Shown one piece after another: positions 19,160 to 21,921 of a stretch of 64,000 nt of DNA. Both the position numbers and the translations under genes were made by a program. The stretch lies in sequence record LC727701.1; one strand, written 5' to 3'. The notes under the pieces are model-generated. The model worked only from the letters and a program-made list of their open reading frames with translations. It was not told the DNA's origin and ran no database searches. The stretch's first letter is position 1. Each line of letters begins with the position of its first letter.

Positions 19160-19303
19160 ATGCAAGTACGAATTGAGGTAATCAATAGTGAGGGCAATCT
19201 GGATATCGAAGAACGGGTTGATATCCGCCCAATGAAGGGGTTAACGGCCTGGATGGTCGCTCTAGCTATCAAAGGTCTTGTAGCTAGCTTTGCACGTAAG
19301 TAA
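19160..19303 (+). CDS. 47-aa hypothetical protein (not in ORF track)
   Basis: AAGGAG RBS; MQVRIEVINSEGNLDIEERVDIRPMKGLTAWMVALAIKGLVASFARK; followed by a hairpin. Confidence 0.7.
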   Translation: MQVRIEVINSEGNLDIEERVDIRPMKGLTAWMVALAIKGLVASFARK

Positions 19304-19352
19304 GGCGACATAAACCCCTCTCCACATGGAGAGGGGCCTGTCTTTATTTTTT

Positions 19353-19868
19353 TTATTTAGTTAACGGCTTGTTTAATTCATTTAACTGGTTATTGTTATT
19401 AACAGCTTCATTATGGGTAATATTTCTACATAATTCAATTATGTATTCTACCTCAGAATAAGCTAATTCAAAGAATTCAGTTAATGACATATTAGATAAG
19501 CTACCTACTTTATACTTGAAGAAATCTCTAGTCAGTCTCCTTCTCAACCCACCTTCGATAAAGTCCTCTTTAGGATTTACCTTATTTAACCACATGGGTC
19601 CGTTTTCTGGTGAACCGATATCGTAATCAAGTAGATATGCTTCTCTTGTTAAACGTGCTGCTGTAGACGGTCTTACTGCCCCTACTGTCGATAATAGTCT
19701 ATCTAAGTGTGTATCATCTTCAGTTAACTTATCATAACCAAAGTTTGGATGTAGGATGTGACCACTATCTTCCTTGAAAGTGGCCTCAAGACGACTATAT
19801 CTCAGATCATTAACTACACCATCCGGTTTGACTTCGAGGCCGCCAAAGTAAAAAAAGTTGACAGCATG
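19353..19868 (-). CDS. gp76-position frame: open for 171 codons with no start codon before 19595; probable -1 frameshift extension of gp77
   Basis: Open from a TGA at 19871-19869 to the stop at 19353 and overlaps the gp77 3' end across a T7 run; the first ATG/GTG/TTG is at 19595. Confidence 0.6.
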   Translation of the reverse strand, partial: HAVNFFYFGGLEVKPDGVVNDLRYSRLEATFKEDSGHILHPNFGYDKLTEDDTHLDRLLSTVGAVRPSTAARLTREAYLLDYDIGSPENGPMWLNKVNPKEDFIEGGLRRRLTRDFFKYKVGSLSNMSLTEFFELAYSEVEYIIELCRNITHNEAVNNNNQLNELNKPLTK

Positions 19869-21415
19869 TCAATAGGGATTAAGTGTGGGAAACGTTCTTT
19901 AAATTTAGTAGCAGCAGGTGACTCACATACTGGACAATTCCAACTTGTAATTGCAATCATTCCAATTAGTTGTGAATCAATGAAGTTACTCACCGCATTA
20001 ATAAAGCGGTCATTATATTCCGGTGTGGATAGAATATTAGTTAAGAACTTTTCAATAGTTTCACGATTAGTGGTTGCAGTACGAATATTGTCTTCAGAAC
20101 TTTCACCATCGTCATCTTCACGTACTTTAATTTCTTTAACAAAATGTGAGAACTGACGGGCAATAGAGATCTTTTGTAAACGTGCAATATACTGAGAACG
20201 TTGCGGACCATCGACTGGTTCATTAAAACTACCTTGAGTCATATCGATAATTGAGTTAATCCAACTATCACCAGACTCTCGGCGATCAGCAATTGTACAC
20301 ATCTCAAGAACAACACCAACGTCACCAAACATTTCAGTTACTTGAGTTTCAATACGGAATCCTTCTTTATAAGTCTTAAGATCAGATTCAGTACATGCAT
20401 TAAACTTACGTGCAATATATTTCTTTTGTTCTTCTGAGAATGCCAGTAGATCATATTGAACAAGCGTTGACATATTAAGTTTCGCTGTTTCAATATGGTT
20501 ACATGTATTGGCATCTGCAATGCATGGATAACTATAATTAAATCCATCTGGATACATAGTCGCCGCTAGTGCGTGATGCAAGAACGGCTCATCAGCTAAT
20601 GAGATAACATGCTCTAGATCAGTTGGGGTGTTGAACTTATAGTTGGATTGAATAACACATGCAAGTGCTAAACTACTAACCATGTTAAGTAACACAGCTG
20701 CCATGTTTGAGAACAGCATACCTTTTGATTCAGCGCCTAGCCGGATCTTTAATTGTGCTAGACGTGCTTGTAGGGCAGCTACTTCAGTACCAGTAGGTGC
20801 ACGTAGTTTTACCCAAATACCTGAATGAGGTAGGAAAGTATCATATGGCGTACCGATGTTAGCTTTACGTGTTAGGAAAACTAGAGTTTCATCATCGGTC
20901 ATTTTACGACCACTGGTATTAAATACAGGTCGTCCAGGTCGAATGATCTTTTCACCATAAGGAATTTCACTAGACCATTCAGAGCCTTCTCGGGCAGTTG
21001 CACCAATTGGCGAATCTTCAACAATAGAGTGAGCTAAGCCCTCCAGAATAGCAGCTGTCCACTTTACACCATCACTAGTGTCATCTACTTTATTATCAGC
21101 AAATGCTTTAAATAGTTCTTTATTGTGATCCAGGAAATCATAAACAGTCTGGGGGTTCTCACGTAGCAAAGTAAGAATGCTAGCACTGTCTTTAATAGCC
21201 GGTTCAGAAGCATCCCGAATATTTCCAGTTTTAGCATTACGTGGAATACGTAGTTTAATTTCTTTTTGATCAGGAACGAAAGGTGGAGTTTCCACCTCGT
21301 CATTATTTTCAATACTAGAGTCAGGATCGTGTTGCGCATTGATCTCATCAATTTGATCTAGTAGATTCTCTTCTGGAGTATCATCGTACTCATTATCGAA
21401 GTCAGCAGTAGCCAT
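19814..21415 (-). CDS. gp77, putative tail/baseplate-hub assembly chaperone (T4 gp26-like, inferred)
   Basis: 533 aa with acidic N-terminus and Cys pairs YPCIADANTCNH and WNCPVCES; the function is inference. Confidence 0.55.
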   Translation of the reverse strand: MATADFDNEYDDTPEENLLDQIDEINAQHDPDSSIENNDEVETPPFVPDQKEIKLRIPRNAKTGNIRDASEPAIKDSASILTLLRENPQTVYDFLDHNKELFKAFADNKVDDTSDGVKWTAAILEGLAHSIVEDSPIGATAREGSEWSSEIPYGEKIIRPGRPVFNTSGRKMTDDETLVFLTRKANIGTPYDTFLPHSGIWVKLRAPTGTEVAALQARLAQLKIRLGAESKGMLFSNMAAVLLNMVSSLALACVIQSNYKFNTPTDLEHVISLADEPFLHHALAATMYPDGFNYSYPCIADANTCNHIETAKLNMSTLVQYDLLAFSEEQKKYIARKFNACTESDLKTYKEGFRIETQVTEMFGDVGVVLEMCTIADRRESGDSWINSIIDMTQGSFNEPVDGPQRSQYIARLQKISIARQFSHFVKEIKVREDDDGESSEDNIRTATTNRETIEKFLTNILSTPEYNDRFINAVSNFIDSQLIGMIAITSWNCPVCESPAATKFKERFPHLIPIDMLSTFFTLAASKSNRMV

Positions 21416-21426
21416 TTAAAACTCCA

Positions 21427-21921
21427 TTATTGTTGAATTAGTTTTTCGTCCCAACCAGCTTCTCGAAGAGTGCCGATCATCGCTAGGATTACACCATCAA
21501 TACCGCGTTCAATAGCACCTTCAATACCAGTATATTTAGTAACAAGCTCACCGATGAGTTTTAGCTCATCTTCATTATTTGCCGGACCAACCTTACCTTG
21601 ATGTTGTGCATATAGGACACTGATAATTTTAGTTAGTCGATTAAGGTCAGCAATAACTGTTTGTAGGTTCTTTTGGAATCCAGTAGGATCAGATAACGTC
21701 GGAATAATTTCATTGATCTTATTAATAACTGGATTAATGAATACTTCAGTTTGTAGAATACGCTTACCTACAGAACCTGCTAGTACATTGACAACATCCC
21801 AACCATCGCGGTTAAGAATATGATCAGCTGCGGCAGCTGATGCTCCAACTGCACGTTCAAATAGACGTAGCGTCTTTTCCTGTTCTTTAGTTAGAGTTGG
21901 TTCTTTAGCTTTATTTGACAT
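21427..21921 (-). CDS. Helical hypothetical protein (gp78 position)
   Basis: 164-aa ORF with GGAG RBS, in an operon with gp77. Confidence 0.7.
   Translation of the reverse strand: MSNKAKEPTLTKEQEKTLRLFERAVGASAAAADHILNRDGWDVVNVLAGSVGKRILQTEVFINPVINKINEIIPTLSDPTGFQKNLQTVIADLNRLTKIISVLYAQHQGKVGPANNEDELKLIGELVTKYTGIEGAIERGIDGVILAMIGTLREAGWDEKLIQQ

Follow-up and report, generated by a model that had tools for sequence, protein, structure and literature searches.

The gene for phiKZ gp77, examined here in a 64,000-nucleotide (nt) stretch of sequence record LC727701.1 (the window), probably gives rise to two proteins from one mRNA through programmed -1 ribosomal frameshifting on a run of T (U in the mRNA) residues. 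The run, the relation between the two reading frames that meet there, and the conservation of both are found throughout the gp77 family. We infer that the ribosome, rather than RNA polymerase, makes the shift and that both gp77 isoforms are functional. Ribosomes that remain in frame would terminate 11 codons past the run, resulting in a form of 533 amino acids (aa). If the Phe-tRNA or Phe-tRNAs instead re-paired one base back, ribosomes would read 165 further codons, resulting in a 687-aa form consisting of the gp77 body, a flexible linker, and a helical C-terminal domain. Re-pairing would occur as a tandem slip in the P and A sites on T TTT TTY, or as a single P-site slip at sites that offer only T TTT or N TTT TTY.

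A -1 frame without an early start codon overlaps the end of the gp77 gene

Over the 2.2 kb surrounding the gp77 junction, the sequence matches Pseudomonas phage NK1 at 100% identity and 47 phiKZ-type genomes at 95-100%. Positions 21415 to 19814 of the window (minus strand) form a 533-aa open reading frame (ORF) that corresponds to phiKZ gp77. This ORF belongs to phrog_4585, contains a C..C plus CxxC pair, and ends in TAG. Across the T run, the gp77 frame (the 0 frame) reads ACT TTT TTT ACT (codons 520-523), with the stop 11 codons on. The -1 frame opens at 19868, directly after a TGA, and meets no further stop until the one ending at 19353 (minus strand; 171 codons plus the stop). This frame encodes a conserved extension that is assigned to phrog_12109. 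Its first ATG, GTG, or TTG is at position 19595, leaving ~85 codons without a start codon. The two frames overlap at 19814-19868 (minus strand), the sole stretch that would permit a shift, and the seven-T run (T TTT TTT) is the only slippery motif within it.

An initial annotation of this DNA, made from the letters alone, had described a seven-T run 11 codons before the gp77 stop, a -1 frame open from 19868 to 19353, and the lack of a start until 19595, and had proposed a ~687-aa slip product beside the 533-aa product. Each of these features was confirmed on the sequence. Counting codons also gives the same predicted lengths, 533 aa without a slip and 522 + 165 = 687 aa with one. As a single expression unit, the 0-frame ORF and the -1 extension make up a recoded gene at 19353-21415 (minus strand), a layout that is conserved in 64 distinct junctions (see below). 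In phiKZ, the downstream frame is annotated as PHIKZ076.4, an 80-aa ORF that starts at the first -1-frame ATG (19353-19595, minus strand). PHIKZ076.4 thus covers no more than the C-terminal half of the conserved extension, and two conserved blocks are missing from it.

The length of the run had been a concern of the initial annotation. All 47 phiKZ-type GenBank records align without gaps across the 121 nt that span it, 30 of them at 100% identity, and wherever tblastn matched a record with both frames, the two matches share the same 31-nt overlap. Since the 47 records align gaplessly and the 31-nt overlap is constant, miscounting of the homopolymer is excluded.

The junction layout is conserved across the family

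The gp77 gene is present in 226 phage records, from chimalliviruses of many hosts. Tblastn with the -1 product detected PhiPA3, 201phi2-1, Psa21, Phabio, Noxifer, PA1C-type, and other Pseudomonas chimalliviruses at 32-41% identity, with E values down to 1e-24. These alignments begin at residues 1-10 of the product, directly past the run and ahead of the annotated starts. At nine Pseudomonas-chimallivirus loci, a T5-T7 run is followed within a few codons by the stop of the gp77 homologue, and in each case the downstream ORF occupies the -1 frame.

We extended the comparison to a set of 81 loci that contain 64 distinct junctions (63 complete) with 23-100% aa identity to gp77; 71 loci were retrieved from IMG/VR using a profile built from 20 gp77 homologues. 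The T run, which encodes a Phe-Phe that is invariant in the gp77 family, varies from T5 to T8 (T5 in 6 junctions, T6 in 22, T7 in 25, and T8 in 11), and the 0-frame stop follows it by 8-17 codons in all 64. The -1 frame opens upstream of the run, at distances of 0-213 nt that do not exceed 13 nt in 20 of 64 junctions. At several loci it opens 0-1 nt from the run, such that the upstream -1 stops abut the run itself. Downstream, the -1 frame continues for 148-180 codons in 62 of the 63 complete junctions. Between the run and the 0-frame stop, the -1 frame contains a stop in none of the 64 junctions, compared to 36 of 64 for the +1 frame, which served as a control. An open -1 frame across the overlap is thus far beyond chance. 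The interval in which a shift could happen is bounded by -1 stops upstream and the 0-frame stop downstream, and the T run is the sole element that all junctions share inside it.

Inspection of homologous loci, which the initial annotation had suggested as a check, revealed a T5-T8 run with an open -1 frame in 64 of 64 junctions. The full T TTT TTN heptamer occurs in 42 of these (T TTT TTT in 29, T TTT TTC in 11, and T TTT TTG in 2), while the others contain N TTT TTY (21) or T TTT (1, as T TTT ACG). The proposal that a -1 slip fuses gp77 to a start-less frame is therefore strongly backed by the family-wide run, the constant frame relation, and conservation of the -1 protein. The same layout is present in 11 named phages outside the set, which belong to other genera: Goslar, PCH45, Ea35-70, DT01, Kwan, CR5, Machina, Halocynthia phage JM-2012, Vibrio phage Yong XC32, Aeromonas phage LAh10, and SPN3US.

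Two phages differ in detail. In Serratia phage PCH45 (NC_091964; locus L084, 566-2766), the 0 frame runs ~45 codons past the run, compared to 8-17 elsewhere, so that the private tail of the short isoform would be much longer. In Pseudomonas phage RVTF4 (PQ015378), the -1 frame is shut only 57 codons after the run, and a separate ORF has been annotated for the remainder of the extension. No other of the 63 complete junctions contains such an additional interruption.

The start-less stretch and the slip-site codon are constrained

We determined whether the part of the -1 frame that precedes any start codon is conserved as protein. In this frame, the first ATG, GTG, or TTG has no fixed place, lying anywhere between +23 and +407 nt past the run, and when 62 extensions are aligned, many lineages have one or more conserved blocks ahead of it. 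In phiKZ, two such blocks precede the first ATG. Across an alignment of 50 extensions, F37 is invariant and G38, Y72, P85, E95, and P130 are nearly so; in phiKZ, F37 lies upstream of the ATG. Between the 0-frame stop and the first start, a stretch that standard annotation treats as non-coding, pN/pS was 0.21 (pooled from 8 disjoint pairs). This ratio indicates that the start-less stretch is under purifying selection.

The run is also constrained at a synonymous site. The first Phe codon within it is TTT in 64 of 64 junctions, while the share of TTT among the other Phe codons of the same genes averages 30% (range 0-94%; gene G+C 33-62%). The nominal probability of this outcome is 1e-53, a value that is only indicative because the junctions are not phylogenetically independent. 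The constraint nevertheless matches what a slippery site predicts, and amino acid conservation alone does not account for it.

A database protein also covers this region. The entry (P0021; 96 aa), named 'hypothetical protein, partial [Klebsiella pneumoniae]', is encoded by a 288-nt contig and is 90% identical to extension residues 22-112, within the start-less stretch. The contig is probably phiKZ-type phage DNA inside a bacterial data set.

Candidate signals that could stimulate a ribosomal shift

Both U_UU.U_UU.Y heptamers and U_UU.Y tetramers rank among the more efficient -1 motifs measured in Escherichia coli (PMC4066793). Several observations, however, weigh against programmed ribosomal frameshifting at the gp77 run. 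In the absence of stimulators, the three best E. coli heptamers (V_VV.A_AA.G) shift only ~0.3% of the time (PMC4066793), and we failed to find a conserved stimulator, either a downstream structure or a Shine-Dalgarno-like element, in the 64 junctions. The 70 nt downstream of the run gave a mean folding z of -0.56, compared to -0.32 for controls (64 junctions, p = 0.58), and 62 of 64 junctions contain no Shine-Dalgarno-like element upstream of the run. The weak 6-bp hairpin proposed in the initial annotation is part of the predicted minimum-energy fold, but the phiKZ junction region folds no better than shuffled sequence (z = -0.09). Since the best heptamers are so inefficient when unstimulated, the yield of the long form could be very low, or some other stimulator exists. 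We also found no trans-frame peptide, ribosome-profiling, or protein-size data for the gp77 long form, and the T7-T8 runs could also support slippage by a polymerase. A final point on this side, the two-ORF organization of the relatives of phage SEGD1, is described below.

The residues that precede Phe-Phe are strongly conserved (E507, R508, P510, H511, L512, P514, and D516), which may reflect protein structure only or may indicate an effect of the nascent chain. One scenario, which we regard as speculative and rather unlikely, is that the shift occurs without a classical RNA stimulator and is driven or tuned by the nascent peptide before Phe-Phe, by a phage ribosome-binding factor, or by the phage polymerase, with the ratio of short to long form regulated during infection.

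Alternative routes to the downstream protein

If a phage or host RNA polymerase stuttered on the T run, the resulting mRNAs of variant run length could be translated conventionally into the long protein. Consistent with such slippage, 36 of 64 junctions contain T7 or T8, chimalliviruses use their own multisubunit polymerases, and the failure to find a ribosomal stimulator is what would be expected if the run alone were the signal. Moreover, UUUUUUU is depleted from enterobacterial genes in all three frames, for which slippage may be the reason (PMC4066793). Two features of the junctions argue against this route. Relative to the 0 frame, the run is held in a phase that gives N TTT TTY or T TTT TTN, which matters for re-pairing of tRNA but not for a polymerase, and 28 of 64 runs are only T5 or T6, lengths that are short for known stuttering by cellular polymerases. 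Because of these short runs and the constrained phase, we favor tRNA re-pairing on the ribosome and consider polymerase slippage unlikely to be the main route.

The downstream frame could also be translated on its own, from a non-canonical start or by re-initiation after the gp77 stop, yielding two separate proteins as the existing annotations imply. The small ORF is annotated apart in many records, phrog_12109 is a family of its own, and in 201phi2-1 a TTG overlaps the gp136 stop. However, the canonical starts are scattered, and in several lineages most of the conserved domain precedes them. Re-initiation would not require the -1 frame to be open and conserved upstream of the 0-frame stop, as occurs in 64 of 64 junctions, and would leave the synonymous constraint on TTT unexplained. 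In addition, the loci where the -1 frame opens 0-1 nt from the run point to the run itself. Separate translation therefore seems very unlikely.

One record may represent a natural fusion of the two parts. In Enterobacteria phage SEGD1 (KU726251, SPN3US-type; locus L085, 1057-3444), a single annotated 795-aa ORF contains both, with a match to the gp77 profile over residues 212-618 and one to the extension profile over residues 691-779 (hhalign probability 96%, E 3e-9). Yet at least 34 SPN3US-type relatives, including SPN3US, have two ORFs, and SEGD1 and SPN3US differ by a net one base in the 351-nt junction stretch. The SEGD1 ORF may be a real in-frame variant or an error in that record. Given the two-frame relatives and the one-base difference, we treat it as weak support for, and not proof of, the fusion. 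In-frame fusions were absent from the 39 matches to the extension in an exhaustive HMMER search (all 45-175 aa) and from the 20 gp77 homologues in a large protein collection (all 485-633 aa). A word-indexed protein search with the extension returned one partial match only.

Last, although some sequencing platforms are error-prone at homopolymers and SEGD1 differs from its relatives by one base in the junction stretch, the possibility that the two frames reflect a miscounted run in an assembly, or a recently broken gene with a functionless downstream part, is effectively refuted by the gapless concordance of 47 independently sequenced phiKZ-type genomes, by the single frame relation that persists from 23 to 100% identity and from T5 to T8, and by purifying selection on the downstream frame.

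The gp77 family and the predicted fold of both parts

To ask what the two proteins might do, gp77 and the extension were searched and folded as separate pieces. The gp77 protein falls in phrog_4585 and phrog_8054 and the extension in phrog_12109, all labelled 'unknown function'. Pfam contained no significant family for gp77 or for nine distant homologues, and no match to the extension. Sequence and profile searches of the PDB revealed no relative of gp77, while the extension gave one weak and unrelated profile match.

The AlphaFold model of gp77 (pLDDT 78, pTM 0.81) matched no fold in the PDB. When compared to BFVD using Foldseek, it recovered its own family and then, more weakly, several models that bear the name 'Baseplate hub assembly protein, T4-like' (E 3e-5 to 4e-3). 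For these gp26-type matches, TM scores were 0.5-0.59 when normalized to the target, but only 0.25-0.33 when normalized to the query. The modeled fold of gp77 may thus be distantly like that of T4 gp26-type 'hub assembly' proteins, a weak resemblance. In the model of the extension (pLDDT 83), a low-confidence linker of ~45 residues leads into a helical domain whose last element is a long helix, and the only BFVD matches of this model were to its own chimallivirus family. The extension probably adds an interaction domain.

The acidic N-terminus of gp77 (residues 1-41; 21293-21415) is predicted to be disordered, with pLDDT < 50. N-terminal length varies widely among the homologues, which are 485-720 aa overall, and the SPN3US-type proteins carry >100 extra N-terminal residues.

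The gp77 homologue in phage Churi is among the early-expressed proteins found by proteomics. In the 201phi2-1 record, a mass-spectrometry mark is attached to the neighboring gp138 and not to gp136 or gp135, and neither gp81 nor gp82 is mentioned in the Goslar virion paper or model. The genes near gp77 are gp75 (helicase), small ORFs, gp78, gp79 (head protein), and genes for RNA-polymerase subunits. We suggest that gp77 is a non-virion, early-detected protein that probably binds zinc; this is the weakest part of our account.

The initial annotation had interpreted the two products as a tail or hub chaperone pair in the style of lambda G/GT. This interpretation did not hold, as the gene context is wrong, gp77 is 533 aa in length, the homologue is detected early, and matches to chaperone folds have E values of at least 2. 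Specifically, gp77 is not located between the tail tube and tape-measure genes, and the best fold matches labelled as chaperones (E 2.0-5.2) are noise. The likeness to T4 gp26 that was also noted there is weakly supported by the BFVD fold match and by a note in one GenBank record (DT01), but there is no sequence match in Pfam or the PDB. It is possible, on this slight basis, that gp77 is an assembly factor of the gp26 kind. A proposed likeness of the extension to T4 gp51 found no counterpart, since Foldseek on BFVD returned only the extension's own family and Pfam gave no match.

Genes and features near gp77

Immediately upstream of gp77 is gp78 (21427-21921, minus strand). Among the relatives inspected, those with an annotated gp78 homologue have this same-strand pair as well. 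Just past the stop of the extension, between convergent genes, is a terminator-like G+C-rich hairpin with T tracts on both strands (19315-19336). The hairpin has 9 pairs, of which 7 are G-C, and lies between the gp77 unit and small plus-strand ORFs, such that it looks like a bidirectional terminator. One of these ORFs (19160-19303, plus strand), which encodes 47 aa and is phiKZ 076.3, has a copy in Churi (locus L001, 5199-5342) that is labelled 'baseplate hub protein'. This name is implausible for a 47-aa ORF and may have been displaced from the adjacent gp77.

Comparison with known recoded genes

The organization of the gp77 gene resembles that of several recoded genes. As in lambda gpG/gpGT, P2 E/E', and Mu, a heptamer close to the 3′ end of the first ORF would allow a -1 slip that yields a C-terminally extended protein beside a short one, and as with the lambda gpG/gpGT type, the frameshift is conserved across many phages by position rather than by sequence. 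However, the lambda-type chaperones are ~100-150 aa proteins that are encoded in a tail context and have a chaperone fold, whereas gp77 is 533 aa, lies in a non-tail context, and lacks that fold. The lambda G/GT slip motif is G GGA AAG rather than a U run, and gp77 is detected early in infection.

E. coli dnaX is similar in other respects. The tau and gamma isoforms share a long N-terminal body and differ by a C-terminal interaction domain, and a -1 slip on a homopolymeric heptamer sets their ratio, as we propose for gp77. Slippage in dnaX yields the short form, with a Shine-Dalgarno-like element plus a hairpin driving it, while in gp77 it would yield the long form and such elements were not found. 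The OrfA/OrfAB transposases of the IS3/IS911 family likewise use a -1 frameshift to join two overlapping ORFs. U_UU.U_UU.C is among the heptamers found in insertion-sequence (IS) elements (PMC4066793). The IS3/IS911 sites carry pseudoknots or hairpins, and their proteins and biology are unrelated to gp77.

Models named for the T4 gp26-type family align with the gp77 model in BFVD, with E values as given above, and gp26 also appears in the note in the DT01 record. Compared to these proteins, gp77 is about twice as long, is absent from the Goslar virion model, is detected early, and has no sequence match in Pfam, PHROGs labels, or the PDB. To our knowledge, no frameshift has been described for T4 gene 26.

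Annotation of the gp77 locus and implications

None of the ~25 GenBank annotations that we inspected joins gp77 to the -1 frame. These records instead contain a small, truncated ORF whose start is arbitrary, spurious ORFs on the opposite strand, or no ORF. For example, in phage MKR2 (PV565008; locus L002, 3375-3632; equivalent to approximately 19400-19660 of the window), the conserved -1 coding stretch contains two small annotated ORFs on the opposite strand, which are probably spurious calls that fill an apparent intergenic gap.

In the literature, we found no description of a frameshift in the gp77 gene and nothing on PHIKZ076.4 or on SPN3US gp39 and gp40. The genes called 'gp77' in papers on Goslar, PhiPA3, and PCH45 are unrelated and only share the number. 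Thus, while the mechanism is of a known kind, its occurrence in the gp77 family, conserved family-wide without a recognizable stimulator, appears to be undescribed.

If our interpretation is correct, a core chimallivirus gene encodes a ~690-aa protein that is missing from all ~25 inspected annotations. Cloning of 'gp77' or 'gp76.4' as annotated, whether for over-expression, localization, or interaction screens, would miss the long isoform. The gp77 gene would also represent a phage frameshift that lies outside the tail-chaperone genes, is conserved down to 23% protein identity, and uses a bare U run, making it a natural case for understanding what sets the efficiency of frameshifting.

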